Assembly: GCF_001194135.2 (NCBI RefSeq)
Contig: NC_069000.1
Location: 34,041,264-34,088,669 of the forward strand
Direction: 5' to 3'
Origin: Octopus bimaculoides
Lineage: Eukaryota
DNA: 47,406 nucleotides
In this document: one piece after another, positions 9,763 through 47,406 of the stretch
Position numbering within the stretch: the first letter of the stretch is position 1
Layout of the letters: the number at the start of each line of letters is the position of its first letter
The notes under the pieces: model-generated
What the model was told of the DNA's origin: nothing
Seen by the model: the letters and a program-made list of their open reading frames with translations, nothing else
Database searches by the model: none
Program-made: the position numbers and the translations under genes

Positions 9763-10167
9763 ACACTCTTTACTTGTTTCAGTCATTTGACTGCGGCCAT
9801 GCTGGAGCACCACCTTTAGTCGAGAAAATCGACCCCAGGACTTATTCTTTGTAAGCCTAGTACTTATTCTATCGGTCTCTTTTTGCTGAACCGCTAAGTT
9901 ACGGGGACGTAAACACACCAGCATCGGTTGTCAAGCGATGGGGGGGGGGGACAAACACAGACACACAAACACACATACATACATATATATATATACATAT
10001 ATACGACGGGCTTCTTTCAGTTTCCGTCTAACAAATCCACTCACAAGGCTTTGGTCGGCCCGAGGCTATAGTAGAAGACACTTGCCCAAGGTGCCACGCA
10101 GTGGGACTGAACCTGGGACCATGTGGTTGGTAAGCAAGCTACTTACCACACAGCCACTCCTGCACCT
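9763..10167 (-). mobile_element. Near full-length bipartite tRNA-derived SINE (head, (TA/CA)n linker, 3' part)
   Basis: Minus strand starts with an A-box-like TGGCTGTGTGG and B-box-like GGTTCAGTCCC, has a central microsatellite and a 3' part containing gaataagtac...ggggtcgat; many partial copies elsewhere in the window. Confidence 0.9.
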
Positions 10168-10179
10168 ATATATATATAT

Positions 10180-10330
10180 CATCATCATCATCATTATCAT
10201 TATCATCGTTTAACATCCACTTTCCATGCTAGCATGAGTTGGACGATTTGACTGAGGACTGGTGAACCAGATAGCTACACCAGGCTCCAATCTGATTTGG
10301 CAGAATTTCTACAGCTGGATGCCCTTCCTA

Positions 10331-22915: not shown

Positions 22916-22991
22916 TTAACCCTAACCCTAACCCTAACTCTAACCCTAACCCTAACCCTAGGGTTAGAGTTAGGGTTAGGGTTAGGGTTAA
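22916..22991. repeat. Inverted telomere-type repeat (CCCTAA)n-(TTAGGG)n at the edge of a gap
   Basis: ttaa(ccctaa)3 ctctaa (ccctaa)2 ccctag ggttag agttag (ggttag)2 ggttaa; the right half mirrors the first five units including the variant repeat. Confidence 0.95.
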
Positions 22992-23595
22992 NNNNNNNNN
23001 NNNNNNNNNNNNNNNNNNNNNNNNNNNNNNNNNNNNNNNNNNNNNNNNNNNNNNNNNNNNNNNNNNNNNNNNNNNNNNNNNNNNNNNNNNNNNNNNNNNN
23101 NNNNNNNNNNNNNNNNNNNNNNNNNNNNNNNNNNNNNNNNNNNNNNNNNNNNNNNNNNNNNNNNNNNNNNNNNNNNNNNNNNNNNNNNNNNNNNNNNNNN
23201 NNNNNNNNNNNNNNNNNNNNNNNNNNNNNNNNNNNNNNNNNNNNNNNNNNNNNNNNNNNNNNNNNNNNNNNNNNNNNNNNNNNNNNNNNNNNNNNNNNNN
23301 NNNNNNNNNNNNNNNNNNNNNNNNNNNNNNNNNNNNNNNNNNNNNNNNNNNNNNNNNNNNNNNNNNNNNNNNNNNNNNNNNNNNNNNNNNNNNNNNNNNN
23401 NNNNNNNNNNNNNNNNNNNNNNNNNNNNNNNNNNNNNNNNNNNNNNNNNNNNNNNNNNNNNNNNNNNNNNNNNNNNNNNNNNNNNNNNNNNNNNNNNNNN
23501 NNNNNNNNNNNNNNNNNNNNNNNNNNNNNNNNNNNNNNNNNNNNNNNNNNNNNNNNNNNNNNNNNNNNNNNNNNNNNNNNNNNNNNNNNNNNNNN

Positions 23596-26861: not shown

Positions 26862-27055
26862 AGAGAGTGTGTGTGTGCGCACGCGCATGTGTGTATACAT
26901 ACATTTGTCTTTCAGTTTTCATTTACAAATTCACTAACAAGGCTTTGGTCGGCCCAGGGATATAGTAGAAGACACTTGTCCAAGGTGCTGCACAGTGGAA
27001 ACGAACCCAAGATCACATGCTTGGAAAGCAAGCTTCTTAACCACACAACTGTGCC

Positions 27056-27056
<1 letters not shown>
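26600..27056 (-). mobile_element. Bipartite SINE with compound (TG/AG)n linker
   Basis: Both halves match 9763-10167. Confidence 0.85.
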
Positions 27057-27096
<40 letters not shown>

Positions 27097-27360
27097 CTTT
27101 TATAAGTAATATTCTAAAAGAATATGTAACTGAACTTATATTGAGTGCTCTATTTTTTGAGCAAATAAATATATATATATATATATGTGTGTTTTTATAT
27201 TAATAAATTTATAAACTTATCAATAATATTCTCAGGAAATCAATATTTAATATTTCTAAANNNNNNNNNNNNNNNNNNNNNNNNNNNNNNNNNNNNNNNN
27301 NNNNNNNNNNNNNNNNNNNNNNNNNNNNNNNNNNNNNNNNNNNNNNNNNNNNNNNNNNNN

Positions 27361-27877
27361 AAAAATAATTTCAATTTTTGTGCATTAAAAAGCCAAAGCT
27401 GTTAGACGCTAGCTTACAGCGATCGATATATACGCAGTGAACGTTTTCTCCATTTGCGTGCAATAAGGCTTAGGGCAAGCGAGTGTAACATCCAAATAAC
27501 TTGAAAAGAATGCATGTGGAAATGCCATTATAATGAATGCTCATTTAAATGTATTTTGCATGGAGTTGATGTACTTTTTAACAGGAGAGGAGTGCTTGCT
27601 GGCTGGTTCTTCTCAAGTTTACGCATTTTCAGGTTCAATGTGTTTCAAATAAGTACTGACAATTGAAGGTGATTGCAAAGACAAAGAACTACCTGTTTTT
27701 TTAAACAATTTTAACAGTGAGAACATTGGACAAAATATGTTATTGACATTAATAGTTTATACCTCAGCTAATTACTGTTGAGAACTGCATAATCTATGTG
27801 TCATGTTAGAGATCTAAAAGGCATTTTCGAATTTCATTCTTTTCTTTAATCCAGGCAACGCTGGATATTTCTGCTAG
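27361..27877 (+). mobile_element. Helitron-like non-autonomous element; only the 3' end is well supported
   Basis: Subterminal hairpin atccag-gcaacg-ctggat (27849-27866) followed after 7 nt by CTAG (27874-27877) and then T, the canonical Helitron 3' terminus; 5' end unknown and possibly in gap 27261-27360. Confidence 0.6.
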
Positions 27878-27880
27878 TTA

Positions 27881-28102
27881 CCTATGTAACCATTTCTGTA
27901 TAAGGTCAAATTCAACTCTTAATTCAAGTTAAATAAGTAAATTTCCTTACACATCCTCAGGGTAAAGAGTAAACACCCCAAAAAATGTATAATCTTTTTT
28001 TTTTTTGTATTTACTCTTTACCCTGAGGATGTGTAAGGAAATTTACTTATTTAACTAGAATTAAGAGTTGAATTTGACCTTATACAGAAATGGTTACATA
28101 GG
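27881..28102. mobile_element. Young foldback MITE with TA target duplication (Tc1/mariner type)
   Basis: About 92-bp arms (27881-27972 and 28011-28102) with one mismatch, flanked by TA on both sides. Confidence 0.9.
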
Positions 28103-28282
28103 TAATAAACTTTAATATATATGGATATTAGCGTCAAAGCTCTTATTTAAATTTTTGATATATAACCAAGGAGATCGATTCATAAGGGGTTTACTATAGA
28201 CCTTTGTGGACGAATTTTTGCTATTTTGGTAACGATTACATGTTTTATCTTACTAATACATTTGGTAGATATTGTTATATGA

Positions 28283-28317
<35 letters not shown>

Positions 28318-28339
28318 CATATATATACATACATACATA

Positions 28340-28484
28340 CATATGATGGGCTTCTTTCAGTTTCTGTCTACCAAATTCAAGGCTATAGTGGAAGACACTT
28401 GATCAAGGTGCCATGCAGTGGGACTGAACCTGGAACCATGTGGTTAAAGAAGCAAACTTCTTACCACACAGCCATGCCTGTGTA
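28340..28484 (-). mobile_element. SINE head fragment
   Basis: Matches 10010-10160 with an internal deletion. Confidence 0.85.
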
Positions 28485-28719
28485 ATATATGTAGTATTGT
28501 GTGTGTGTATCTATAGATCTTTGAAAGATGGTTGGTTGTGCTGTGACCAGGATGGAAGTCATGCCATTCTTCAGCTAGCTTGAAGTTAACAATTTCCCAA
28601 CATTTCTTTTCCAGACACTAATCATAGACTTTACTGGGGAGGCTGAATAAAGAGATTCTTCTCTATAATTAGAGCACTTTCTCTTGTCTCCATTTAAAAA
28701 AATTGATGATATCAACCCA

Positions 28720-28995
28720 GGTTGGCTTTGCCTCAGTGTCTGAGTTCCAAAGCCATCTGACATGTTGCAGGAGAGAATTGCAAGATGGATTCTTCAAGCT
28801 GAACCAATCAACAAGATACCCAAGAGTAGACCCAGTACAATATGGTTGGATAATATCCATGGTGTCAATTGGACATGCTTGGAAATCCAGCCAGAAATTC
28901 CAATAATAGTTACTTCTGATAGGACCCAATGGAGGAGGTGCCTGAGGATTCTATCCCAACGACCCTTCCAGTTATAGTGAACAGGGAAGATGGAC
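28720..28995 (+). mobile_element. RTE-clade LINE 3' end (different family from 14-515)
   Basis: ORF 28762..28977 QERIARWILQAEP...PKSRPSTIWLDNIH...W..LEIQPE...DRTQWRRCLRILSQRP resembles the RTE/Expander-type terminus R..W.D.I...W..LGI.PE...DR..W...L.LLPPRP. Confidence 0.7.
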
Positions 28996-29524
28996 GAATG
29001 AATAGATATGCTTATGTCTATGTAAAATAAGGGATAGTCCCTTACATATATATATACAATATGTGTATGTGGAATGCGTGTGAATGTATGCACACACACA
29101 CATATTTACACAGTGACAGTTTACTCTCACACACGACAGGATAGTGAGATTTATTTTTACTTTTAACAAATGTATAATATTGGTAACTTAACACGATAAA
29201 ATATCTTCGTTACTAGCATTCTCAATAATAACTTCGTTACCAATATTCTCAATAACACTATTATCTATGGATTATTGTAGTTGATTTATTAGCTTATTGG
29301 AACATTCTTAACACCATAGTTACAAATATATAAACTATGGCGACCATGCGCCATTCCTTCCGTCGTTTCCACACCTTACATAATTTATTGATAACGTCAC
29401 CAAGTATTTCCTCCGTAGAACTATACATACATACAGATAGATAGATATACATACACATCTCTCTCTACATGTGTGTGTATATATGTAATATAAACTTCGA
29501 TCTGTTGTATCGATGGTTTTCATT

Positions 29525-29610
29525 TTCATTTTATTTATTTCAGTCATTAGACTGCGGCCATGTTGGGGCACCGCCTTGAAGCATTTTTGTCGAATAAATT
29601 GACTCCAGTT
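29525..29610 (-). mobile_element. SINE 3' terminal fragment
   Basis: tttcagtcattagactgcggccatgttggggcaccgcc. Confidence 0.75.
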
Positions 29611-29724
29611 TTTTTTTATTGTTATGTATTTTAAAAAAGGATTTTTCTTTAGTTGAAACAGCATGTATAAACACACATTAAATATCATTATCTAAATATA
29701 CTGTTATGTTATATATATATATAT

Positions 29725-30267
29725 NNNNNNNNNNNNNNNNNNNNNNNNNNNNNNNNNNNNNNNNNNNNNNNNNNNNNNNNNNNNNNNNNNNNNNNNNNNN
29801 NNNNNNNNNNNNNNNNNNNNNNNNNNNNNNNNNNNNNNNNNNNNNNNNNNNNNNNNNNNNNNNNNNNNNNNNNNNNNNNNNNNNNNNNNNNNNNNNNNNN
29901 NNNNNNNNNNNNNNNNNNNNNNNNNNNNNNNNNNNNNNNNNNNNNNNNNNNNNNNNNNNNNNNNNNNNNNNNNNNNNNNNNNNNNNNNNNNNNNNNNNNN
30001 NNNNNNNNNNNNNNNNNNNNNNNNNNNNNNNNNNNNNNNNNNNNNNNNNNNNNNNNNNNNNNNNNNNNNNNNNNNNNNNNNNNNNNNNNNNNNNNNNNNN
30101 NNNNNNNNNNNNNNNNNNNNNNNNNNNNNNNNNNNNNNNNNNNNNNNNNNNNNNNNNNNNNNNNNNNNNNNNNNNNNNNNNNNNNNNNNNNNNNNNNNNN
30201 NNNNNNNNNNNNNNNNNNNNNNNNNNNNNNNNNNNNNNNNNNNNNNNNNNNNNNNNNNNNNNNNNNN
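29725..30267. other. Assembly gap flanked by (TA)n; other gaps at 2661-3067, 22992-23595, 27261-27360, 35694-35703, 42200-42680, 45821-46230
   Basis: Runs of N seen directly. Confidence 1.
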
Positions 30268-30954
30268 ATATATATATATATATATATACGTCAACGATAC
30301 CAAATTGTGTGTTTATGTTTATACGCACATGATCGCTTGTTTTAAGTTTTATTAAAAATAAAATTCTTTTGAGATATTTCCTCTTATTAACGAATATAGC
30401 TCCATCATGGCTTTAACACGAAACTAATATAAATGTATAAATAATGGCTATCCCCACAGCCTCATAGAAGAAATACTATTGTTAGTTTTAACTACTACTG
30501 TAAAATAGTTTTAGTAACTGTTTCTTTATTATATATACATTTTAATATACATAAGAAATGTTTGAAAAACATTAAGGTGGATAATCATAATTACTATATA
30601 AATGCATTTGATTATTGTAAATATTCCAACGCCATGTTTAAAAAAAATTATGGCGATTCGCTTAACATTATTAGAAAAGATTGTTGTGTCGATACTTTTC
30701 TATAAATTTTACAAATTGCTACTGCACAAAATAGTGTATTGAAAGGATCTTTATATATATATATGATGTGTGTCTATGTATATATATATGTGTGTGTGTA
30801 TATGTGTATATAAGTATATATATATATCTTTAAATATAGATATATAGAATAATTTGTAAAATTTGCCTATAAGGTTTTTATTTACGTACTTACTACTTTG
30901 TAAAATTATTACTGATTTTACTCTATATTATTTAAATTATACATACATACACAC

Positions 30955-31002
<48 letters not shown>

Positions 31003-31849
31003 TCACATATCACATTCATATATTTATATTTGAGTGTGTTATATATATTAATACAAACACATACAAAAAATTACTCATTGAATTTCCTAAACTAATGACT
31101 CGATTTAATAGCTAAAAAGAAAAAAAAAGATGAAATTATCAGTTTATTCCGAAAAAGGAACTTCGGTGATCCAGAAAGTTTAGCGTCTTTCCGTGATAAT
31201 AAATACGTCTTAGTTTCCTTGGAGATTTTTCGTCAGTTATTTATTTATTAGCTTTAACTTTAGCTGATCTTTTCTCCGTTCGTTAGCATTTATTTTTTAA
31301 AACTACATATGACTCGATTAATTCGGTTTTGTATTTCGTAAGTATAAAACTGTGAAACCATACTTAAAACCATTCTCAGCGACTTTATTATTACTATTAT
31401 TATTAACATTATAATCTATATATATTTTAATAGACATAAAAATGTTTATAACCCTTGAACCATGGAAAGTGGGAGTTATTATTGACTAATTCGAATAACC
31501 TAAATTTCACAACGCTATAGTTTTCTAACAATGGCGATCAACCATCATTCTATATGTCGCATTGATATATATATATTTTTATACCTTCTTAACAAATTTT
31601 TGAGTAAAAGATTATATAAAAGGATTTTTATTTTTAGTCAAACTAGTTACTTTCTTAGTTAAAAATCAACTATCCCACATTCAGTTCATTTTCCGGGACG
31701 CTATTTCTTTTTATTTTTAAACATGATTATGAAATAATTTTCAGTGCAGAAAATAAGAAATATATTTTGTTAAAACAATAACAATCGGAGTTTTCTTTAG
31801 TAATTATTCTATATTTTCGATTTTTGTAAATATTTACTTTAATATTCGA

Positions 31850-31960
31850 CAGATGCAAAATGGCGGAAGGGAGGGGGGGCTGTAAGCTTTTTTTTTAAGC
31901 CATGGAGTGACGTGGCAAATACTATGCAGTAAACAACACGTGATCAAGACGTGGGTGTGA
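31850..31960. promoter_or_regulatory. Putative bidirectional promoter motif cluster
   Basis: CAAAATGGCGG (YY1 type, 31856-31866) overlapping GCGGAAG (ETS-like), G-rich box, TGACGTGG (31908-31915), CACGTG (31937-31942), GACGTGG (31948-31954); reverse YY1 site CGCCATTTTG at 33036-33045; CpG-richer than the flanks. Confidence 0.55.
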
Positions 31961-32424
31961 GTTGCAGAACAGACATTAACAAATTCCTCCGCTATGATAC
32001 TATTTATGTATATCGTATTATAAGTTTTAAATTTTCATATATTTTTTCTTATATATAATTAATATATAATTTTTATTTGATGGACAAGGAAAATATCCAT
32101 TAGATTTAATTGTATTTGAAAATATAAAAAAAATGTGAATGGAACTATATTTTACCTTGGGTGCGTATTAATACTGAAAAATGTGATTAGACCTATTAGT
32201 ATAAATACTACTGGTGTACTATTTTCCAGCAGTTGCAGTACCCGGTCGCCTGATCAAGTTCTTGTCAATTTGTCGTAAAACTTTTTTTCCTTATTTTTTC
32301 GAAATTTAAACATAATTATTTGTGCAACATTTGTAAAATATCAGAAAATAAAACATTTGTATTTTGTGTTATACATATGTCTATTTATTCTTTTTAATAT
32401 TTTACTTGACTTTTTCTTCTGCAG

Positions 32425-32473
32425 TTAACGTTATTAGGAGTGAAATATTTCGACAACCTGGCTTGTCAACATA
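32425..32473 (+). ncRNA. Candidate exon of a divergent plus-strand, apparently non-coding transcript
   Basis: Branch-like cttgac, polypyrimidine tract and tgcag acceptor, then donor ATA|gtgaga; further plus-strand donors such as gttaag|gtaagt at 35146/35147 and GATGAG|gtaata at about 39177. No sustained ORF found. Confidence 0.4.
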
Positions 32474-35400
32474 GTGAGAATCAAAGGTTCACTGATCTAT
32501 CCTGGTTCCCAAGTAGACTCATGCCATTTCTGCCTAAATTCCTGCGTATATTCCTACATTTTATGGGTAATCATGGTTAACTGTTTTAATGTATTCCGCA
32601 TCCACCCTGGCAGCTTGGAAAAAGTACACGGGCAATCAAAACACCACTTTTTGTAAGGTTTCTCTTTACATTCTTCTATACATTTACAGCTCCAAATGTA
32701 ATAAAAATTCTTGATAAGCGAAAAAAAAAAAAAAGACACATAAAATAATTTAAAAGAAACTACATATATATTGGTTACAGTGTAAATGCTTAAAATAATT
32801 TCATTTTATTGAAATAATCGCGAAATTTGTTGCGGCGCAATTCTCTTTGTTCGTGGTTTTCTTTTTTCTATAGCCATATGCCTCAATAGGAGAAAGCTGG
32901 CCTTATAAAATTGAAATAAACCATTTTGTGACGGAACTCCTGCTACTAGAAGAAATAACCTGCTTACTGTGTGATGAGTGACGTGTGTGGGTAAAATTGT
33001 AAGTTGTGTTGAGTAAAGGTCGAGTGTCCTTGAGACGCCATTTTGATTTATTTCTACGTCTTTTGTATTTAGTTCGTGACCTTATTTTGTCGACTAATTT
33101 TTTTTTTCAAATTGACATTTAAAAAAGTCTTCACAGTTAATGTAATTGTAAAACGATTGTTGAAAGCACTAGTTTTTAATTAAGTTCTGACTATTTGAGA
33201 ATTATGACGGAATTTTTTTTTTCGAATTAAGTTTAGAGACTTCTGTTTTATTAGAACATAAAATACGTCATACGTAATAATGACGAAAAGATTCGTAAGC
33301 TAAATTGACGTTAATTTAGAATCTTGTTTTACATGAATTTGTATTTAAATACCAGTGACGAACTTAACTAATCAAAACTTCATTTGTCAGTATGCGAAGC
33401 ATTTTCCTAATGCTAATGTGATGACATTTTATGAAGATTAAATTTGATCTGATGAGACGTAGATTTGCTCCTCAAAGATGGTCGTCTTTGAGGGCTTGCT
33501 TGATGGTCGCGTTATGGGGATTTTAGGTCAACGATTTCATGTGCCAGACCTGCATTCTTGGGGGGAAAAGTCCGAGTTTTTGGAATACTGTTTGAATTCG
33601 AGATAAAATAATAAGAATTTTCTCTAACAATGAGTTGTTTAAACATGCTTGCTTGTGTTATAGCATTTTCTCGTCCACGCAATTTGTTTGTATTTTATGG
33701 CTACAGTGTTCACCTTGAGAATCCTGTTTTTGAGACTACAGCAAGGTCTGTCATTTCTCGCGCTCCGGTCCACGGGTTGCCGCCAGTTGGCTACTTTGGA
33801 CCCAAACCCTTTGTCTTGTCCAGGCTCATGTCTCCCCATCATATTGTGTACATACAGATACAACAAAGGATATCTAAACAACGGTTCAGGTAAACCCTGG
33901 TGTTTTACTTTTGCTACCCTGTGTATGTGGACACGATATGAATGTTGTCACTTGTATGTATTAGATGGTGATGGTGACTCGTGTTGAGTGAATGATTGAT
34001 TTTGACATCTGTATTGAATTGTGTATATTTTATGGTCACTAATGCGGTATGGCAACACTGGATTGTGAATATTCTCGATCGATAGTACTGTTACTTTAAG
34101 GGAATCGGAACTCGTTTAAGACAGTTTGTATGGGAAATATCAGTGTGATGCTTCTTAAGTTAGCTTTGTTGCAGAATATTCTAGTAAACGTGATTATATA
34201 GGAATTGACAAATTAATTTTTTGTATTTAGTGCAACAAGAAATTGTAATTATCTAAATATAGTTTCAAGTGCAATGTGTTTTCCACTCTTGGGAAGCCAC
34301 TTGTTTTAGCTGGCTATTTTTATTCTAGGGATGTTTCACCATGCAAAGTTTAGCCATTTCCTGGCAAGGGAAACAAATGTTGATGACATAAGGATAAATT
34401 TTTACTATTACACTTTGTCAAGCTATTTATAGCTCGTGTTACTATTGATATTTTGACTTCTTTCAATTCCAAAGTCAGAATTGGAATATAGTAATATTCG
34501 TTACGCGCTTGTCTTGACTAGTTTATAAATGAAGATGAGTTATTCTGAATTATGTGGAAGTTGTTGGCCTTTGTCGAGTGATAATTTAAAGCTAATCAGA
34601 AAAGATTGGTAGCAAATATTAAATATTTTGCTTGTATGCGGGGAATGAATTCATTTTGCTTTCATTTCTCGAAACCCTTTGTATTTAGAATGTTTATATT
34701 TTAACTTTTGAAATTATATAATTAGCATTGTTAATGTATTTCAATGAAAGCTTGCTAAGTTTATTCTGCAATTGAGTCATGTAATATTCTTAGAACTAAA
34801 ACAAGGTATATTATCGTGAATGAGTGATTGTGCCCGAAATTGTCTTAGATGTAAGTTTATTAGCTTCAGGCTATTGATGTTGTAAATATTGTTTGTTGAT
34901 AAAAGTATTGGAATTTGTACCAATATTTGTCTTTTTCTCCCCCCAACACGATTTTACCTGGATGAAAATGGGGCTGAGATGCTGGCAAGACGAAGTCAGC
35001 TTCTTTGGCAAAAAAAACTAGAAGAATTATAGAAAGGCTATTCTGTGACAGGGTAGACAAAAAGCCATCAAATATTGGGGAGCTGTTAAATCTTATTCAA
35101 CCAAGCTACACATAACGATTGCCTGGGCCATGGTTTTTTGGTTAAGGTAAGTCTTGTCACCAAATGAGTTTGCAGTCTCTACTTGTTTTAGCTTTGTAGT
35201 TCATAGCAGATGATTTGATTAAACTCTTGTTTGTTTAAAGAGGTTTTACTAGATAATATATCAATGATTTCAGATGTGGAAATTTTGATATGAACAAATA
35301 CAAAGATAAGATTGTATTTTTGAAGTTTAACTTCCTACTATGCTTTGTCACTGTAAAATGATTTCATTAAGGATAAGCTGGCAGTTTTAATGTACTCTAG

Positions 35401-35511
35401 ATTTTGTTTCTTCAACTTCATTAAAAATGGGTGCTTTGTAACGAAAATTTCCAAGTAACATTCAGATGTAAATTACGATGATATCGGAATTTAAGTGGAT
35501 ATAAAAAATTG

Positions 35512-35716
35512 GGTAATCTTCAAGTTTAGGGGGGTAAATAAAAATATTCAAGGGAAATAACTGCACGACTTACCAGTATTCGTTTTCTTCCAGCTGTTTA
35601 TAAATAAATCACACCCCAACGTCAATCAAATCACGTGTGATTTATTTATAAACAGATGTACGGAGAATACTGGTAAGACGTTCAGTTACTTCCNNNNNNN
35701 NNNCTTGAAGATTGCC
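35512..35716. mobile_element. Merlin-like foldback MITE 1
   Basis: Ends GGTAATCTTCAAG / CTTGAAGATTGCC, 8-bp direct repeat AAAAATTG at 35504-35511 and 35717-35724, inner arms 35553-35614 and 35635-35693; a 10-N gap lies in the right arm. Confidence 0.7.
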
Positions 35717-35864
35717 AAAAATTGGATACCCATATATAAATGGGTATTTCTCATAATTTCGAGCTTTTACATGGTGAGCGCGCAACGTACACCATGTATT
35801 TTTTTTTTTCCTTTCTCACATTAAATTTCGTTATAATTGCAATTTACACCATCTGGAAGTTAGG

Positions 35865-36118
35865 GGTAATCCTTCGTTTTAGCTCGACAGAACCAAACAA
35901 ACGCTCGGCTGTTTCCATGACAACTCAATTCACTTCGGTTATCTTCGTGACAATTGCTAAAATGGAAAAGGCTAATGGATCGTGTGTGCGTGCGCGCGCA
36001 CAACACGTTAGCTTTCTTCTCCATTTCAGCAACTGTCACGAAGATATCCGAAATGAATTGTCGAGTTACGGAAACAACCGAGTGTTTGTTTTGGTTCTGT
36101 CGAGTTGAAACGATTACC
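35865..36118. mobile_element. Merlin-like foldback MITE 2
   Basis: Ends GGTAATC / GATTACC, 8-bp direct repeat AAGTTAGG at 35857-35864 and 36119-36126, imperfect arms of about 110 bp around a (TG/CG)-rich loop. Confidence 0.75.
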
Positions 36119-36424
36119 AAGTTAGGGAACAAGGTCAGGGAGGGATTATTTGATCTGTTGGTTTTGGGACTCTACATAATTTGATAACATAGTTTCTCGT
36201 TTTCGTTTTGTCTTGGTTAATATCTTGTAGAAGTTTATCTCGTGTGATGCTGGCGAAGCATCACACTAGATTGGTTGTAATTTTTTTAGGATATTTTTTT
36301 ACATTCCCCGCCTCCAATGTGTGGTATTAGGATTCTGTAAAAAGTTGCAAAATTCATGGTCAAATATAAAGACCTTCGCCCGGGAACAAAAAAAATTAAC
36401 CAACCTGGGGGTCGGTGTCAACAA

Positions 36425-36960
36425 GTGTGTCGAAAACGAATGTGTTAAATGCGGGGTGGGGAGGGGACTTTCGGAAAATTCACAAGATCCGATATTTCCG
36501 TTATAACTTTTGGGAAAATTGATGTGTATTGATTTTTTTAACGGAATCCCACATTTTTAGCTATGGAGGATCACACACATAGATACCCGTAGGCCTTTAA
36601 GCAGGCTATCTACATGCTAGAAATAACAGCCAAAACTGCAATAACGATGAAATTTTGAAAAGCTTTTGGTTAATTTTCAGATTAACACCCGCACGATTTT
36701 CACTAGGGGGTTAGGGTTAGGGACGGAATTGCCTAACCCCAACCCTAACACCCTAGTGAAAATCGTTCGGGTGTTAGTCTGAAAATTTATCAAACTTTTT
36801 TCTTCCGTAACCAAAAACATGGGGATTCCGTAAAAAAAAAAAAATCTATATCCACCCCCCAATGACGGAAATATCGGGTCTTGTGAATTTTCTGAAAGTC
36901 CCCTTCACACCCCCAGGGTCGTCAGCGCTTTTTTTTTTTTCATATTCGTCTTCCACACGC
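36425..36960. repeat. Imperfect nested foldback element with a telomere-like inner hairpin
   Basis: Outer arms about 36460-36580 and 36800-36902 (ggactttcggaaaattcacaagatccgatatttccg mirrored); inner hairpin 36672-36787 with ttagggttaggg / cctaaccccaaccctaa; outer boundaries approximate. Confidence 0.75.
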
Positions 36961-39900
36961 TATCCTTACAAGTAAACAAATTTAAAAGATTGTCGAAAAT
37001 ATAAGTTTAGGCTTTAAAATGTGCTTCATTCCAAACGCTTGTCTGTTTCTTATAAATGTAACGTTAATAGCATCTTGTATGTTGGTTTTCTCGTAATGGG
37101 GAAAACTATTCGATGTAACTATAATGGTACCATACCCTGGACAAAGTATAGGCCAGCTAAACTATCAAGGTGGTGCAGCGCTTTCTAAGATAAATTTCTA
37201 GCTAATATTAAGTTTCTAGATGCTGCCAGAAAATTAGTGCACAGTTTAACTTTGGATTGGATCTATTGTAATCCTGTTTCAATATAAAACCATTTAAATA
37301 ATATACAAGTACTCACTAACACGGGAGTGGGCAGAAGTGGACATACGAGTTGCTTTAAAGGAATGGAATGTTCTTTTCATTATTTTCCTAAAAAGAACTT
37401 TCCACTCCTATTGAATTCTCTCGGTACGACTCGCAAAAACAAGTAGATAATGTTTTGTTGCAGATTTAAGGGGAGATAACTTGATTTAGTCTTAAACCAG
37501 TCACATGAATATACTTTTTTTCACAAAAAGTGCAGTGTTTTCCTTTCGATTTCACGAAATGAAATTTGAAAGTATTTCACAGCCAGGTAAATGTGTATTG
37601 ATAGGCTTAAAGTAGACATATTCAATAATTCATCAATAACTGCTACATGAATTATATTCTGTTTGCAAGTAGAATGTTGATCCTTTTGATGTCAAAGCTT
37701 GTGTAGCATTGAAACATTTTATAGAATCTAAACTAATCGACACATGTAGGCAATGCATTTCACTGGTGATGGGCTGAAGTATTTTTAGATTATCACGTAA
37801 GTCAAATGTTATATGATGCGACATATATCTATTGCATTAAAGTATTGAAATTTGTACACTATAAAAGATGTCGAATGCAGGCATGCTAATATATCTAATC
37901 CAAAGTTTGTGTATAGAGCTTTCTGGTTAGGTTGTCAATGAAGTGGCTAAGATAACTATCGTATTCTTGGATATGTTTTAGTATTGTTTTGAAGTTTAAC
38001 AAAATAGTTGAACAACAAAAGATCTTTTCCTTTTTAGGTCTGCTGTCCAATATTAGAAGCTTACAAGGCAATTTGCATACTTGTCCAAGACACTTGGGAC
38101 AACTGCAGTGGCAGGAATGTTGTGTTGGATGAGTGCTTCATGAAACATGGCTTTTGAATATTCAAAGGAAAGGGTTTCTGTAAATTTTAACAAGTTTCAT
38201 CACATTTTCTAAATGAAATGAGTTGTAATTTATTGAGCATCATAACCAAAACTGGAACTGGAAATAGACAAGGCAAACATGAATTTACATTTACAAAAAG
38301 ACAATCTCACATGAACTATTTTAACTGCATACAACAAAACAACTTTGTGGATGACATACAGCAGTAATGGTTATATAGTATGGAATATACAAATGTGCTG
38401 AAAGATTAGGGTGAAATCGAGCTTCATGGTTACGTGAATAGGGAAAAAAAAATAGGTTCTTATGAAACATCACATCTTTAAATAGTGAACCAAACAAAGT
38501 GAATGTCAATTTGATAAACTTGGAAGGCAAATATTCTCATCTTGCGATGTTCTCCAGAATGAAGTGTCTCATTTGAGATGAGTTGTTATTGCTGCAATAC
38601 AGATAGAAAGAATTTTGAAATGGATGACAGCAGAAAAAAGTCCTACAGTATGATGTATATTATCCTGAAACTCTCCAACAAATTCTTCAGGTATGATAGG
38701 TTAATTCACGGGTTGGAGAGATTGCTTTTTTTATTTTATTACAGATTTTTCTTTCATTGTATTGCAATAACAATTTCCAGAAGAAAATAGGATGAATATG
38801 TAATAAGATAAATTTATCATGGCTGCAAAATTAATTTTGATCTTGATAATAACTAAAAAAAAAACAAGTGTTAAATTTTGTTTCCAAATGATAGACCTTT
38901 CGTATGTAGAACTTCAGGTTCCATTGCCATTTAAAATGTTGGGGGTTTTTTCCCTCCTGTATTCTATTTAAAATATAATTACAAGTAATATAGAAGATAA
39001 ATTTAAAATTCTTTGACAAATTTGTTCCTAGGGAGGGGGTGAAAAGTTCTATATTGCTAGGTGGTTTCCACCTAGCATATTTTTTTTCATTTACAGATAC
39101 TGTTATAATTGATGAAATGAATATTCTGTAATTGACGACAATTTTCATCAGCCCTTAAAATATTTGAATAGGATGAGGTAATATTTGTGCAAGCATCTCT
39201 GTTAGAATGCAGAGAAAACAGTGTCACCCACTCATTCTGATTTGGGAAGGGAAGAACAAAATGTCTTCAGGTATGTGAGAGCACTTGGCATTAATTGTTG
39301 TAAAGGAGAAAATAGGAAAGAAAATTGCAATGTAGCACTGAAAAGTTGCAGCACCAGATGTTTTTCCTTCCCTTTCAGGTATTTGGTATTTTCTTTTAAA
39401 AGGTGATGACAACACTAATAGTGAATATACATGCATCATTGATAGTTTGCAGCAGGTTAGGAGCAAATGTATCAAAGAATATGATTGCAAGGTAAAAGGA
39501 AATTTTTTATATATATTTACAAGATCCAAGTCATCTCTAACAGTTATTGACGATAACAGAAAATGCATCATTTATGATATTAACTACACTGGAAAAAAAA
39601 TTTAATATATAGTAGGCAAATGAACAACTACAGAAATTTTTTTAATCTTTTATGGTTTTGTACAGTGCAATATCTGTTTGGAATCAGAAGCATGACTTCT
39701 GCAATTTCAAATATATTGTCCAGTTGGAATTTTGTATTAAGTGGAGACTTGTGAAATAGAGGGTTTGGTATGAGTATAAGATCAACTTGGTATATGAACA
39801 TGTGGAATATGGTTCTTTTATTTTCAGGTACATAAACACATCTATACATGACACAGCATCTACAAATGATCTAATATGGCGTTAACTCCTATTCAGATGA

Positions 39901-40361
39901 ATCTTCATGATTCACTACAGTTAGCTGACATGACAGACCAAAAAGAAACTGTTCCTGTTTTGCAGTAACATCTTTACAGAAATTTGCATAATTGAGTATT
40001 TTATTATCTTGGTTGTAAAACAATGTCTTAACACATTAGAAAACTTGAGCATATTCTGAGAGAATCTTTAATGAATTGACAGCTTGAAATGTACAAAAGA
40101 ATCATCTTTAAAAACCTGGTGATAGAGGGCCATGATTAATATATGTGAAATTAACACTTAAAATCTGTGATTTATGGTTGGTATCACTACTATATGTTTC
40201 ACTTGTAGCTTCCTAATCTAACGATTACTATGAGCTGTGATCAACTAACACCTTCAAGCAACAGGTGGAGGTGTAATCTTTCATTTTCAGGTATATTGAG
40301 TGGCAAATTCATTTTCACTGTTTAAAACGAGTTTTTTTGTAAGCGTTGTGATTGCATATGA

Positions 40362-40482
40362 ACTGCATTTTTTTTTTAAACCTTAGATTATCTAAGGAAA
40401 CTGCTGCATTTTTTTTTAAACCTTAGATTATCTAAGGAAACTGCTGCATTTTTTTTTAACCTTAGATTATCTAAGGAAACTA
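40362..40482. repeat. Three tandem copies of a 39-40 bp unit with an internal palindrome
   Basis: Unit ctgctgca(t)n aaa CCTTAGAT-T-ATCTAAGG aaa; palindromes start at 40381, 40421 and 40460. Confidence 0.95.
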
Positions 40483-41589
40483 CATTCGTGGATAAGAACT
40501 TCTCTGTTAATGAATACCTATTACAAAAATTACAGCATGATTTACGAAATAAAGGAATGGGTGTAACAGTATCAGCATTATGATGCACCTGCTCTGAGAT
40601 AAGATATTGACTGATTAATGGTGACTAGAGGTGAAAAGTGGAGGTTTATTTTGGTTCATTTTCAGGTTTGTTGCTGATCAATCACTGATATCTACATGAA
40701 ATAAGAATAAGACTTCTGGTGAAAACTAATAGCATCTAACGGTAGCTGATAAAGGTCTGACTGACGTTTAATACCAACTATATGATGGACTTCCCTTAAG
40801 GTATCTCCAGTTATGGTTTAAGTTTCCTTTACAGGTTCTTGTAGTATGACTCACTTTTGAAAATCAGTTGGTAATGTTAACAAGATGAATTGTACATGAG
40901 GTTGTTTCAAGCATCTGACTCCGCTTGTATTTGCTGATTTATCACATGGAAAGAATAGGTACTATCTTTTTTTCCTCAGGTTTTCTTTTAGATATTTTGT
41001 GGTGTGGGAATTTATTTGGCACCAGGTGTTTACTGTATGGTTCAGAAACAATGATTGTCAGTTGTCAATGTATACATCAGGGGAGGAAATGAAACTGCAT
41101 CTACTGATTGTGAAAAGGAGAATGGGATCTATGGTGAGAACTGGGGGACAAAAAGTGAAAACTAGTGACAGGTGGAACGTTTAGAAGCTGGTGAAAACTG
41201 ACAGCATCCACTGAAGGCTAACAGTTCTTACGGGATATGTCTAATTTCTTTCCAATGTGATGATGGATATGCCCTGAGAGACAACAGCAAGAGGAGGCTC
41301 TTGGACATTGCTGGTTTGGTGGAAAAGGTGAGTTTTTTGTTTTTTTTTTTCAGATGTCCTATGATGGTTTAGAAACTTGTGCATCTAGTCAGCTGTTTCT
41401 CTGCTGCATTATGTAGTAACATTGATTGTTGGCTGTTAATGTCTATACTTGTGAGTGGGAAAATGAATTCACAACCAACTGATGGAACATTTGTGACAAT
41501 ATGGTGGAATCCCCTTGATAACTGGATATACAATGGAAGCTGGTACTACCTAATGAGTCAGACAAGAAACTGGTGTTACATCTGGCAAA

Positions 41590-42905
41590 TGATGGAACTT
41601 CAGACTGGTGGCAACTGCGATGGAACATCATCAGACTGGTGGCAACTGCGATGGAACATCTTCAGACTGGTGGAGACTGATGGAACATCTCATGGAGACT
41701 GCGATGGAACATCTTCAGACTGGTGGTGACTGCGCTGGAACTTCTTCAGACTGGTGGAGACTGATGGAACATCTCATGGAGACTGTGATTGAACATCTTC
41801 AGACTAGTGGAGACTGCGATGGAACTTCTTCAGACTGGTGTCGACTGATGAAACATCTCATGGAGACTGCGATGGAACATCTTCAGACTGGTGGCGGCTG
41901 ATGGAACATCTCATGGAGACTGTGATGGAACATCTTCAGACTGGTGGAGACTGATGGAACATCTTCAGACTGGTGGCGACTGCAATGGAACATCTTCTGA
42001 CTGGTGGCAACTGCGATGGAACATCTTCAGACTGGTGGAGACTGCGATGGAACATCTTCAGACTGGTGGAGACTGATGGAACATCTCATGGAGACTGCGA
42101 TGGAACATCTTCAGACTGGTGGTGACTGCGCTGGAACTTCTTCAGACTGGTGGAGACTGATGGAACATCTCATGGAGACTGTGATTGAACATCTTCAGAN
42201 NNNNNNNNNNNNNNNNNNNNNNNNNNNNNNNNNNNNNNNNNNNNNNNNNNNNNNNNNNNNNNNNNNNNNNNNNNNNNNNNNNNNNNNNNNNNNNNNNNNN
42301 NNNNNNNNNNNNNNNNNNNNNNNNNNNNNNNNNNNNNNNNNNNNNNNNNNNNNNNNNNNNNNNNNNNNNNNNNNNNNNNNNNNNNNNNNNNNNNNNNNNN
42401 NNNNNNNNNNNNNNNNNNNNNNNNNNNNNNNNNNNNNNNNNNNNNNNNNNNNNNNNNNNNNNNNNNNNNNNNNNNNNNNNNNNNNNNNNNNNNNNNNNNN
42501 NNNNNNNNNNNNNNNNNNNNNNNNNNNNNNNNNNNNNNNNNNNNNNNNNNNNNNNNNNNNNNNNNNNNNNNNNNNNNNNNNNNNNNNNNNNNNNNNNNNN
42601 NNNNNNNNNNNNNNNNNNNNNNNNNNNNNNNNNNNNNNNNNNNNNNNNNNNNNNNNNNNNNNNNNNNNNNNNNNNNNNNNNGACTGGTGGCGACTGATGG
42701 AACATCTCATGGAGACTGCGATGGAACATATTCAGACTGGTGGCGACTGCGATGGAGCATCTTCAGACTGGTGGCGACTGCGATGGAGCATCTTCAGACT
42801 GGTGGCGACTGCAATGGAGCATCTTCAGACTGGTGGCGACTGCGATGGAGCATCTTCAGACTGGTGGCGACTGCGATGGAACATCTTCAGACTGGTGGCA
42901 ACTGA
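41590..42905 (+). repeat. 31-bp minisatellite with 53-bp and 28-bp variants, spanning a gap
   Basis: Unit GACTGGTGGCAACTGCGATGGAACATCTTCA; N gap at 42200-42680. Confidence 0.95.
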
Positions 42906-45641
42906 TACAATGTTTATGACAGCTGATTACAATTCTTGCATTAGGGAAGCTGCTAACAAAAGAATTTCCACATACAACTGAAATGATTCATACATGTTGA
43001 TTTTTGGAACTGGGAAAAATAAGGTGAGTTTTTCTTTTCAGATATTTTCTTTTGCAGATGAGGATTGTAGAATCTCCTTGATAATTGTCTAGTGGATATA
43101 GTATGGAAGCTGATGACTTCTAATAGAACATAGTCTACTGGAAATTGGCAAAAAGGGAACATGTAAAAGAGATTAGTAGCAATTGTGTTGGGATGCAACT
43201 AATTATTAAAGTTATGGTGGACCTGCCTTTGGACTACTGCAAATGTTGACTTTGGAAGAAAGAAGTGGAAGGAAGTACCTTGATGATGTTTACTATGAAA
43301 CTTGATGGTTGGTGATGATTGGAACATTTGAGGCAACTTTGTATATTGCAGACGGTGGCTCATTGCTGATTTGTGAGAGAAGAGGTGAGTTTCTCTTTTG
43401 TGTGGTTTTCTTTTGCAGAAAAGTATGACATCTATAATTGACAACTATCTGGAGACAGCTGTATGATGGAAGATTTGTGACATTGGTGGTGACTGATGCA
43501 ATCTTCATGAAGAAAATTGTCTGATGGATATGCAGTAAAATATGGTGCTTACTAATAGAACATTTATTTACTGGAAATTGGTAGAAGGCTGTTGGCAATT
43601 TTCATGGAATGCAAATTAAGAATACTACGAAAGTTATGTTGGACGTGCATTTAAATGTCTGTTAACAGAACTGGTGACTTGGCAAGGAAAAAGTGCTTTC
43701 ATTTCCTAGATTTTTGGGCTTTTTTCATCCGTAGTACATTACGGTGAGACAAGAAACTGGAGACAACATTCATAGAACATCAAATGGAGACTGGTGGCAG
43801 TTGTGATGGAACATCTGATGGAGACTAGTGGCAACTGTGATGGAATATGTTAGACTGGTTGCAGCTTCGATTCAACATAGAGACAGGTGGCTGCTGTGAT
43901 AGAACATCTGGTAGTTGTGATGGGACATCTGGAAGTGTTTGGCAACTGTTGTGGACACTGGTTGCAATGGTGATAGAACAACTAATGGCAACTGAAAAAC
44001 CACCTGAAGACTGGCTTTTTTTTTTCTCCATAAAATTTTCTTTTGCAGATAAGGATGACATCAAATGTTGACAGGACTGGTAACTTAGGAGGAAAGAGGT
44101 GGCTCATTTTGTTTCATTTTCAGGCTTTTTAATATCTAATGAAACGGACAAGAAACTGGCATCTGTGATGGAATGCCTGATGGAGACTGGCATTGGTGAT
44201 GGGGCATCTGCAAATTGACGGCAAAGAAGATGGTGGCAACTGCAGTGGAACATCTGACGGAGACTGGTGGCAAGTGTGATACAACATATGACAAAGACTA
44301 GTGGCAAACGTGATGGAACATATATAATGATGGCTGAAGACTGATGACAACTGTAATTGAACTGGAGACTGATAGCAACTTTGGCAACTGTGATGGAGCA
44401 TATTATGAAAACTGGTAACTAGCATAGAACATCTGATGGAGGCTGGGGTAACTGCTCTGAAATATCTAATGAAAGCTGCTTACAAAAGAACCTCAACATA
44501 GTGATGTCTAATGTGAAACCTGATGGTTGGTGATATGTGAAATTCTGAGATGACTTTATATGTTGAAGAGACTGGTTCATCATTGCCGAATTGTGAGACT
44601 GAAAGGGGTAAGGTTTTTTCTTCTCTAGTATTTTCTTTTCTGCACATGAGGATGACATCTGTAATTAACAACCAGCTGGTGAGAATGGAATATTTGTGAT
44701 AAATTGATGGTAACTGCATGATAGAATCTTGAGGATACTTGTCTGGTGGGATGTATTGTATAAGCTGATGTCTGGCAAATAGAACAAATCTACTACTGCA
44801 AATTGGCAAAAAGGAGACAGACCATGTATTGAAGGTTGGTGACTGATTATTATCGAAGTTATTGTGGACATGCGTTTGAATGTCAACATTGGTGACTTTG
44901 GAGGGAAGTGGTGTTTCGTTTTGTTTCATTTTCAGGATTTTTGGTATCTTGAGTCAGACAAACTTGTGACAACTTTGGAGCTTCTAATGGAGACTGGCAT
45001 CTGTAGTGGACACTTGTGGCAACTGTGATATGAACAACTATGAAAGATCTAATGGAAAATAGTAGAAACTGTGAAACGTCTAGTGACAGCTGTAATGGAA
45101 CGTGCAAATGGTGATGTTGCCAAGCTCATGATAGAAGTGGAGATGCATTGTGCTTGAATTTCAGGCTTATTCTCATTTGTCCAGTATTTGGTGGTTGACG
45201 CATGATGGTAACACAAGAAAAATTCCTATTACCTCAATGATGTTCACTGTGTAATTTGATGGCTGATGATGATTTGAACGTCTTAGGCAACTTTGTATAT
45301 TGCAGAGACTGAACAGGTGAGTTTTTGTTTTCTGAGGTTTTCTTTTGCAGAGAAGGATGACCTCTGTAATTGACAACTAACTGGAGACAGCTGTAACCTA
45401 GATTTGTGATGTTGGTGGTGACACTTTGGTGGAATCTTCATAAGGAGAATTGACTGGTGGGTAATGCTGTAGAAGGTGGTGCCTACTAATAGAACATTCA
45501 TTTACTGGAATTTGGTAGAAATGGCTGTTGGCGATTTTCATGGAATGCAAGATAAGATTACTACCAGAACTGGTGACTTGGGTAGAAAGAAGTGGTTCAC
45601 TTTCATGTTTGTGATTGGTGAGACAAACTGGACACATCTTC

Positions 45642-46630
45642 GATGGAACATCTGATGGAGACTGGTAGCAATTGTGATGGAACATCTGATAGTGACTGGT
45701 GGCAACTGTGACGGAACATCTGATGGTGACTGGTGGCAACTGTGACGGAACATCTGATGGTGACTGGTGGCAACTGTGACGGAACATCTGATGGTGACTG
45801 GTGGCAACTGTGACGGAACANNNNNNNNNNNNNNNNNNNNNNNNNNNNNNNNNNNNNNNNNNNNNNNNNNNNNNNNNNNNNNNNNNNNNNNNNNNNNNNN
45901 NNNNNNNNNNNNNNNNNNNNNNNNNNNNNNNNNNNNNNNNNNNNNNNNNNNNNNNNNNNNNNNNNNNNNNNNNNNNNNNNNNNNNNNNNNNNNNNNNNNN
46001 NNNNNNNNNNNNNNNNNNNNNNNNNNNNNNNNNNNNNNNNNNNNNNNNNNNNNNNNNNNNNNNNNNNNNNNNNNNNNNNNNNNNNNNNNNNNNNNNNNNN
46101 NNNNNNNNNNNNNNNNNNNNNNNNNNNNNNNNNNNNNNNNNNNNNNNNNNNNNNNNNNNNNNNNNNNNNNNNNNNNNNNNNNNNNNNNNNNNNNNNNNNN
46201 NNNNNNNNNNNNNNNNNNNNNNNNNNNNNNTGACGGAACATCTGATGGTGACTGGTGGCAACTGTGACGGAACATCTGATGGTGACTGGTGGCAACTGTG
46301 ACGGAACATCTGATGGTGACTGGTGGCAACTGTCACGGAACATCTGATGGTGACTGGTGGCAACTGTCACGGAACATCTGATGGTGACTGGTAGGAACTG
46401 TCACGGAACATCTGATATTGATTGGTAGCAACTGATGGAAAATTTGATGGTGACTGGTGGGCAACTGTGACGGAACATCTGATGGTGACTGGTAGGAACT
46501 GTCATGGAACATCTGATATTGATTGGTAGCAACTGATGGAAAATTTGATGGTGACTGGTGGCCACTGTGATGGAACATTCGATAGTCTGCTGGAAACTGT
46601 AATAGAATCTTCTGATGGAGACTGGTGTCA
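45642..46630 (+). repeat. 34-bp minisatellite spanning a gap
   Basis: Unit GACTGGTGGCAACTGTGACGGAACATCTGATGGT, near-perfect on both sides of gap 45821-46230 and degenerating after about 46400. Confidence 0.95.
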
Positions 46631-47406
46631 GCCATGGTGTAATGTCTGGAGATGGGTACCAACCGTGATATAACTTCTGAAGACTTATCGCTTTCTCTTC
46701 TCAAGTATTTTTGTTTGCAAATGAGGATGACATCAAGTGTTGACAGGACCAATAACTTAGGAGGAAAGAGGTCGCTCATTTTACTTCATTTTCAGGCTTT
46801 TCAATATCTAATGAATCAGACAAGAAGCTGGTGGTATCTGTGAAGAAGACTGATGGCTGCTGTGACGGAGCATCTGCAAATTGATGGCAACTGTGATGGA
46901 ACATCAGATTATAAATGGTAACTGGAGGAGCAGATATCGGCAATTGCAGTGGAAATGGTGAGGAACCGTCTGACGGACACTTGCAACTGTGGAAAAGGAA
47001 TGACAAGACTGGTGACAAATGTGGCAGAAATACTAATGGATTCTGGTGACAAGTCTGAATGCCTAATGAGAGCTGCTTAGAAAAGAATCACTGTATAAGC
47101 TTAGTGGTGTCTACCATGAGACATGATGATCTGGACTTCTGGAACAGCTTCATCTATCGAAGAGACTGACTCATCATCACCAATTAGTGAGATTGAAAGA
47201 AGAGGTGAGTTTTGCTTTTGAGATATTTTCTGTTGCAGATGAGGATCACATCTGCAGACAACCAACTTGTGATAACTATGTGATAGAAGATTCATGATGA
47301 ATTGGAGGAAGCTAGTGCTGACCAGTAGAATATCTTATGAAATCTGTTTGCACTTGTGATGGAATGCAACTAATTGTTACCAAAGTTATTACTGTCCTGA
47401 CGTGAT

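Follow-up and report, generated by a model that had tools for sequence, protein, structure and literature searches.

The window analysed here, a stretch of 47,406 nucleotides (nt) of Octopus bimaculoides DNA (assembly GCF_001194135.2, contig NC_069000.1, positions 34,041,264 to 34,088,669 of the forward strand), was found to contain exons of USP32 on the minus strand and, at 40226-47406, a tandem-repeat family that profile searches of the window placed on the plus strand only. The family spans 7.2 kb, of which 6.3 kb are read, and it probably extends past the end of the window. It is an object of an ordinary kind, a nested minisatellite, and the repeat region is non-coding. A preliminary description of the same DNA had seen at least 6 kb of one repeat family and had proposed a repeat-built long non-coding RNA (lncRNA) downstream of a divergent USP32 promoter. 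Its observation was partly confirmed: the single family and its one orientation were retained, and the start was found to lie about 400 nt before the position 40620 given there.

Organization of the repeat family

Two short units, ACTGGTGGCAACTGCGATGGAACATCTTCAG of 31 nt and ACTGGTGGCAACTGTGACGGAACATCTGATGGTG of 34 nt, were delimited by cutting at ACTGGT, and the 27-nt core ACTGGTGGCAACTGTGATGGAACATCT was found to be common to both. With up to 9 of 27 mismatches allowed, the core was present in 56 copies (0.025 expected by shuffles), all of them on the plus strand and all at or beyond 41604. No copy was found on the minus strand or in the other 40 kb of the window, which supports a family specific to this locus within the window. 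Tandem Repeats Finder reported head-to-tail periods of 31 and 34 nt with 82-95% matches, in agreement with the structural definition of a minisatellite. The period-31 arrays were located at 41598-42170 and 42710-42904 (95% matches) and the period-34 arrays at 45645-45820 (95% matches) and 46231-46627, together with higher-order periods of 53/84 nt and 101 nt.

The stretches between the arrays were found by blastn to match only one another, at 63-81% identity, and the block was made of layers of unequal age, with 95-100% identity within the young arrays against 63-81% between modules. Two kinds of inter-array module were recognized. The M modules, of about 300 nt, begin at 41354, 43058, 43419, 44646, 45351 and 47239, and the shorter N modules begin at 43993 and 46666; the element at the end of the N module (TTCATTTTCAG/G) was also present at 40226-40308, 40586-40684 and 44868-44970. 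Because the M-module profile also matched the short-unit arrays, the M modules are regarded as old, decayed arrays of the short unit. The family was thus found to contain two young arrays, older decayed arrays and eight T-rich junctions.

No inverted repeats were found in the repeat region. A uni-strand source of PIWI-interacting RNAs (piRNAs), or the internal repeat of a transposon, would agree with the single orientation over at least 7 kb and with possible germline transcription, and is nevertheless highly improbable. The block is one homogeneous family and not the mosaic of diverse transposon fragments that a piRNA source would be; it is bounded by no terminal or inverted repeats, contains no transposase or reverse-transcriptase open reading frame (ORF) and has no second copy in the remaining 40 kb of the window.

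On the plus strand, the block was found to be preceded by a non-repeat, CpG-depleted leader at 37501-40225, with no recognizable coding exon, few plus-strand poly(A) hexamers and five TTCAGGTA motifs. The oldest clearly recognizable copy of the N-end element (ending in TTCATTTTCAG/G) was located at 40226-40308 (nhmmer N profile, E=3e-14), followed by another at 40586-40684 (nhmmer E=1.7e-20) with 73-77% blastn identity to 44056-44130 and 44890-44943. The first junction, J0, at 41328-41353 contained AG/GTGAGT, a T-run and CAG within 26 nt, and was followed by the decayed array of module M0 at 41354-41597 (nhmmer M profile, E=1.5e-11 at 41466-41625). The young 31-nt array of ACTGGTGGCAACTGCGATGGAACATCTTCAG units, with 29/53/84-nt variants, occupied 41598-42904 and held an assembly gap at 42200-42681. 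A linker at 42905-43023, whose 3′ end was a perfect donor-like AGGTGAGT, led into junction J1 at 43024-43057, which ran from GTGAGT to TTTTGCAG over exactly 34 nt. Module M1 at 43058-43384, with stops in three plus frames, was followed by the 34-nt junction J2 at 43385-43418 and by module M2 at 43419-43749 (nhmmer E=7e-98), which was 78% identical to M4.

Downstream of M2, a decayed short-unit array at 43750-43992 preceded module N1 at 43993-44160, which was 81% identical to 46666-46822 and contained an acceptor-like CAG at 44048, lacking a donor, and the N-end CAG at 44123. It was followed by a decayed array at 44161-44450, a linker with a decayed junction (GGTAAG to TGCAC, 38 nt) at 44451-44645, module M3 with an N-end element at 44646-44960, a decayed array and linker ending in AGGTGAGT at 44961-45316, a 34-nt junction at 45317-45350 and module M4 at 45351-45626. 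The young 34-nt array of ACTGGTGGCAACTGTGACGGAACATCTGATGGTG units, with a higher-order unit of about 101 nt, occupied 45627-46665 and held the second gap at 45821-46230. Module N2 at 46666-46831, in which the acceptor-like site was decayed to CAA at 46721, was followed by a decayed array and linker ending in AGGTGAGT at 46832-47204, a 34-nt junction at 47205-47238 and module M5 at 47239-47406, truncated by the end of the window.

The motif TTCAGGTA, an acceptor-like CAG directly followed by GTA, occurred in five exact plus-strand copies within the 1.6 kb of 38686-40293, where 0.05 were expected (P about 3e-9), and two of the five aligned with the N-end element. These motifs may represent juxtaposed splice sites or else family copies of great age. 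Judged from them, the family may reach in very decayed form to about 39.3 kb, and the leader is possibly the start of the same transcription unit as the block and in part made of very old copies of the family. An unrelated tandem repeat of three 40-nt copies (97% matches), with its own palindrome CCTTAGATTATCTAAGG, was found inserted at 40363-40481, with an N-end copy of the main family on either side.

Assembly gaps

Both assembly gaps in the repeat were found to sit within the young arrays, with an identical unit variant and orientation on either side, and are explained by the nested arrays. The flanks of the upstream gap shared a 2-nt overlap and those of the downstream gap a 44-nt exact suffix/prefix overlap. 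The upstream gap is given as 482 N, which is 17 mod 31 where 29 is required for register, and the downstream gap as 410 N, which is 2 mod 34 where 24 is required. Since these lengths are out of register with the periods, the copy number is not given by the assembly. The young arrays are continuous in kind through the gaps, as judged from their flanks, and the assembled copy number is not reliable; the overlap at the downstream gap and the position of both gaps within perfect arrays fit an unresolved copy number and are no proof of polymorphism. Reading frames or ORFs drawn over a gap carry no meaning.

Coding capacity

The preliminary description had pointed to candidate exons, such as the one from 43058 onward, with stops in three frames, and plus-strand stops were indeed present in all frames of every module. 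In the 34-nt array the minus strand was open in all three frames, with ORFs of 148-321 amino acids (aa), whereas in the 31-nt array the plus strand was open instead. Neither period, 31 or 34 nt, is divisible by 3, and the open strand switches between the arrays. Stop codons are rare on the minus strand because it is G-poor.

A homology search with one of the minus-strand ORFs returned a single match, the "uncharacterized protein" A0A0L8FND8 of Octopus bimaculoides in UniProt. Its residues 43-177 mapped to 45820-45401, with the last ~110 identical, and its N-terminus mapped from 46635 onward. By these positions, A0A0L8FND8 is a model of this very locus drawn over the downstream gap. Its footprint (A0A0L8FND8_OCTBM, 45401-46635, minus strand) covers the 34-nt array and the gap.

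The reading of this entry as a real minus-strand gene for a 34-aa repeat protein is barely credible, even though the 34-nt array has three open frames on its minus strand and a deposited model covers 45401-46635. The G-poor strand has few stops by composition, the plus strand is open instead in the 31-nt array, and the model runs through an assembly gap. The 95% identity of successive 34-nt units shows that the sequence evolves by its nucleotide unit; a repeat of codons would have a period of 102 nt. No Pfam domain was found in A0A0L8FND8, and no true relative was found in 1.84 billion representative proteins, where two unrelated low-complexity sequences were the other matches. The repeat ORF likewise had no homologue beyond the locus's own model in 5.8 billion clustered proteins. 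A0A0L8FND8 was rejected as a protein: the tandem repeat is poor in stops on this strand, the ORF read from it is almost certainly spurious, and the entry is probably an annotation artefact.

Pfam searches of the local ORFs gave nothing real, the marginal matches on the repeat ORF being repeat artefacts. Six-frame ORFs of at least 30 aa in 37301-40225 had no homologue, and no coding exon was recognized upstream of the array. Exact look-ups of seven proteins (six regional ORFs and the P0001 model) in public assemblies returned no contigs.

Nucleotide composition, splice-like sites and RNA structure

The repeat was found to contain C at 0.11-0.20 and G at 0.23-0.33, with A about equal to T, and its GC skew was +0.20 to +0.33. 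The strong G/A bias reported earlier was not borne out, as the purine fraction was just 0.53-0.59; the actual bias is of G over C.

The perfect donor-like sequence AGGTGAGT was present five times, always on the plus strand and always within the repeat. No perfect donor was found on the minus strand, which contained only one weak donor-like site. Among the six donor-bearing junctions AGGTGAGT was intact in five, while the modules were just 63-78% identical. Loosely defined acceptor-like sites numbered 18 on the plus and 18 on the minus strand, because the minus strand is pyrimidine-rich. The statement that donor and acceptor consensus sequences form only on the plus strand therefore holds for the perfect donors but not for the acceptors.

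The distance from the donor to the acceptor-like TTTTGCAG was exactly 34 nt in four copies (43024-43057, 43385-43418, 45317-45350 and 47205-47238), and 26 nt and 38 nt in two further junctions. Distances of 26-38 nt are below the minimum size of a spliceosomal intron in animals. The junctions were therefore rejected as mini-introns, and no workable intron length, as expected of a spliced plus-strand gene, was found between a neighbouring donor and acceptor, though donors and acceptors lying far apart may still pair. In the alignment of the M modules, AAGGTGAG and TTTTCTTTTGCAGAT were among the best-kept 8-mers and CTAATAGAACAT was kept to the same degree, so that this motif conservation test on the splice-like sites is suggestive but not decisive. 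By sequence comparison, the donor-like and acceptor-like junctions appear to be the best-kept parts of the long unit.

The GATG-GAA-CATC stem-loop that had been proposed for the unit proved negligible, as the GATGGAACATC hairpin has a predicted folding free energy of -0.2 kcal/mol. Arrays and modules folded no better than mononucleotide shuffles on either strand, with plus-strand z values of -0.3 to +2.5, and no defined structural motif per repeat unit, of the kind seen in Xist repeat A or the roX boxes, was found. Rfam 15 gave no match at the gathering score in the whole window and only two chance-level matches (E 0.5-0.9) in 40000-47406, and no transfer RNA was found in a tRNA scan.

These results bear on the proposal that the array forms exons of a stable nuclear RNA transcribed from the plus strand, a functional repeat-built lncRNA in which dozens of unstructured G/U-rich units and junctions resembling U1 and pyrimidine-tract sites would recruit RNA-binding proteins by a logic like that of hsr-omega, Xist, Rsx or FIRRE. 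The uniform orientation of the family agrees with it, as do the AGGTGAGT motifs kept perfect in five of six junctions in spite of the module divergence. So does the T-tract and CAG/G element, which was recognizable even in the oldest copies, together with the five TTCAGGTA motifs upstream. The predicted RNA is unstructured (z at or above 0) and would for that reason be accessible to proteins. A unique leader of 2.7 kb followed by at least 7 kb of repeats recalls the layout of hsr-omega, and all the signs of plus-strand transcription described in the next section would count for such an RNA. The proposal is decidedly unlikely all the same. Conservation is not peculiar to the splice-like motifs, since CTAATAGAACAT and further islands are kept to the same degree; introns of 34 nt are not plausible, the hairpin is of negligible stability and Rfam gave no match. 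The rapid turnover, with young arrays and an unsettled copy number, is typical of neutral minisatellites, and no link of the published Z-linked lncRNAs of octopus, Zmast and Zfest, to the locus was found in the literature.

CpG landscape and strand asymmetry

The ratio of observed to expected CpG was 0.23 over 1-27 kb (151 against 661 expected), which includes the USP32 body, 0.84 over 27-37.5 kb, with 1.16 at 29-33.5 kb, and again 0.23 over the non-repeat 37.5-40.2 kb (15 against 64.8 expected). In the repeat it was 0.21-0.47, and the excess of TpG/CpA matched the CpG loss. The zone at 27001-37500 is probably, on its CpG content, an unmethylated promoter or intergenic zone between two CpG-depleted domains. 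Within the young arrays, the CpG/TpG/CpA positions 9, 10 and 15 were the least conserved (0.50-0.55 against 0.68-1.0 elsewhere), which points to methylation-driven decay.

Within the CpG-rich zone, CACGTG, TGACGTGG and GCCATTTT-type promoter motifs were found clustered within about 100 nt at 31856-31945. Three foldback elements were also present there, at 36453-36913, 35895-36091 and 35553-35693, the third straddling a 10-N gap. The largest was found to contain 52-nt arms with 90% complementarity and an inner 66-nt palindrome with TTAGGG/CCCTAA-like repeats, and resembles a miniature inverted-repeat transposable element.

A skew index, (T-A)/(T+A)+(G-C)/(G+C), was negative (-0.115) in the confirmed part of USP32 on the minus strand, near 0 from 15.5 to 33 kb and positive (+0.13 to +0.24) from 33 to 40.2 kb. 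Substitutions read on the plus strand showed A>G above T>C: 27/182 against 14/182 for the decayed units, 24/291 against 16/371 for the M modules and 51/473 against 30/553 for the two pooled (odds ratio 2.1, p=0.0017). The G>A and C>T changes were symmetric. In mammalian DNA with germline transcription, such an asymmetry is the mark of the non-template strand. Of the poly(A) hexamers AATAAA/ATTAAA, the plus strand of 37501-40225 holds a single copy where 7.9 would be expected, and none of 500 simulations gave so few; the minus strand holds eight, with 7.7 expected. The CpG depletion, the skew, the A>G excess and the hexamer shortage are indirect signs that lean towards a plus-strand germline transcription unit from near 37.5 kb and would fit transcription divergent from USP32. 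The five perfect U1-type donor sites, all on the plus strand, point the same way.

Several points weigh against that reading. The skew is a weak guide here, because it is about 0 over 15.5-27 kb, the expected USP32 intron. For the direction of substitutions, the majority base of the consensus was taken as ancestral, and the application of the mammalian A>G/T>C rule to cephalopods is an assumption. The plus-strand hexamer shortage is a weak signal, found post hoc, and it does not mark transcription generally in this genome, since the sense strand of the USP32 body was found to contain 70 hexamers against 64 expected and thus no shortage. The array could also lie in USP32 intron 1, with exon 1 beyond the window. 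Finally, 5-methylcytosine in O. bimaculoides is concentrated on constitutively expressed gene bodies and is low on intergenic DNA and transposons, while satellite repeats are relatively more methylated (PMC9476566), so that the CpG decay of the repeat could reflect satellite methylation and not transcription. Only the 2.7-kb non-repeat leader speaks against this account of the decay.

A neutral, untranscribed intergenic satellite or minisatellite, in which the unit itself accounts for the asymmetries and satellite methylation for the CpG decay, is rather unlikely on balance. It is in keeping with the classic tandem-repeat dynamics of the block, with the higher methylation of satellites in this species and with the finding of no homologue and no RNA family. 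The GC skew of the arrays (+0.2 to +0.33) is far above any transcription-linked skew and is therefore set by the unit itself. Against it, the CpG depletion begins ~2.7 kb before the recognizable repeat, in unique sequence (15 against 64.8), and this unique leader has a plus-strand hexamer shortage and a skew of G over C of its own. The A>G against T>C asymmetry, moreover, comes from substitutions after amplification and not from the composition of the unit.

USP32 and the upstream part of the window

USP32 was found on the minus strand, with exons at 15522-15394, about 13272-13117 and about 2067-1861. The exon at 15522-15394 contained a clean acceptor and donor, and the joined exons matched Pfam USP32_N with E=1e-18. 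Neither tblastn with human and molluscan N-termini nor a pattern search located the first coding exon (MG..., about 19 aa) in the readable window; it may lie in one of the gaps at 22992-23595, 27261-27360 and 29725-30267 or outside the window. Of the divergent USP32 promoter proposed before, the gene and its strand are thus real, and the position of the promoter is only inferred because the first coding exon was not found.

The missing exon leaves room for an array that is intronic in a minus-strand gene, either in intron 1 of USP32 or in a gene ending near 38 kb, the CpG decay then being the body methylation of the host gene. Minus-strand AATAAA/ATTAAA sites at 38.2-40.0 kb and the sole public gene model here, which is on the minus strand, point the same way as the failure to find the first coding exon (MGxxx...) in the readable window. 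This arrangement is judged improbable: a 10-kb undepleted zone (27-37.5 kb) with promoter-type motifs at 31.86-31.95 kb separates the depleted domains, the sign of the skew and the A>G excess favour the plus strand as sense, the minus strand contains a single weak donor-like site, and exon 1 may be hidden by one of three gaps that fall within 22.9-30.3 kb.

Other elements were found in this part of the window. Head-to-head telomere-type hexamers, (TAACCC)x7 directly followed by (TAGGGT)x5, were present at 22917-22990, abutting the gap 22992-23595 upstream of USP32 exon 2. A dispersed element resembling a short interspersed nuclear element was present in three copies, at 9938-10213, 26871-27203 and 28204-28485, each beside a microsatellite; the copies share the pseudo-ORF text ...LTRLWSA(R/Q)GYSRRHL...SG.EP..., which had no Pfam match. 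A minus-strand ORF of 106 aa at 63-383 (…RPRKTWDGVVKHDLRMLGL…) was found to resemble the tail of a retroelement protein and had no Pfam match.

Origin of the block

The explanation that we favour, and hold tentatively, is a locus-specific nested minisatellite within a germline-methylated non-coding domain that is probably transcribed from the plus strand. A G-rich, C-poor unit of 31-34 nt would have been amplified repeatedly through replication slippage and unequal exchange. Old arrays would then have decayed into the 300-nt M modules and the degenerate stretches, so that the minisatellite would be growing inside its own remains. A longer unit of about 0.36-1.7 kb, in the order module, N-end T-tract, array, linker and T-rich junction, would subsequently have been duplicated at least eight times. 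The two fresh arrays, of the 31-mer and the 34-mer, would have arisen recently and broken the assembly.

The block lies within a non-coding domain that begins near 37.5 kb and carries the CpG-decay signature expected of germline methylation. Its layout, its want of coding capacity and the CpG and skew patterns are observed, and transcription and its strand are inferred. The plus strand would probably be the sense strand, either of an unannotated non-coding transcript or of the upstream part of a gene past the window. The junctions may act as U1-binding or pyrimidine-tract-binding sites and would not be 34-nt introns. No specific RNA function is implied by the nested minisatellite explanation.

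A stronger version, in which 37.5-47.4+ kb is a plus-strand nuclear lncRNA gene divergent from USP32, is likewise unlikely, slightly more so than the exonic array considered above. In such a gene the fast-evolving, unstructured units would bind proteins and the unspliceable junctions would tether the RNA to chromatin, making it a putative cephalopod counterpart of the hsr-omega/Xist type. If plus-strand transcription is true and the repeats are exonic, the locus would be of greater importance; the description of cephalopod lncRNA biology has only started. The CpG and skew landscape offers a cheap, sequence-only means of guessing the boundaries of octopus transcription units, which could be checked against existing methylomes.

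Comparison with known systems

Mammals, marsupials and flies are known to have regulatory RNAs built of repeats. The literature was found to contain no description of a cephalopod repeat lncRNA at this locus, and no paper linking USP32 with octopus or with the octopus Z chromosome. The octopus Z-linked lncRNAs Zmast and Zfest have been described (doi 10.1101/2024.12.09.627507; preprint dated 2025), and the paper reports neither their sequences nor the genes beside them, by which they could be tied to the USP32 locus.

The tandemly repeated, non-coding host-gene exons of the mammalian SNORD116/115 type resemble the octopus block in a unit that is bounded by acceptor-like and donor-like sites and has stops in all frames. 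They differ from it in that the octopus "introns" are of 34 nt, with no small nucleolar RNA or microRNA (Rfam was negative) and no hairpins. Xist, Rsx and roX share with the block a non-coding nature and blocks of tandem motifs in one orientation. Xist repeat A and the roX boxes are structured repeats, whereas the octopus unit has no stable structure.

In the hsr-omega nuclear transcript of Drosophila, tandem repeats of 280 nt extend over 5-15 kb behind a unique leader, and these repeats organize speckles of heterogeneous nuclear ribonucleoproteins. The octopus locus is similar in that 2-3 kb of unique non-coding leader precede many kb of repeats in the same orientation, here predicted to be unstructured. 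It differs in a unit ten times shorter and in having no sequence similarity, and its transcription is putative.

G-rich minisatellites of the Jeffreys type share with the octopus arrays units of 10-100 nt (31 and 34 in octopus) set head to tail, with one G-rich strand, interspersed variant units, higher-order periods (here 53/84 and 101 nt) and a turnover that breaks assemblies. Unlike them, the octopus array is embedded among its own decayed copies, which make up about 5 kb, and the block contains at least eight longer units with conserved T-rich junctions.

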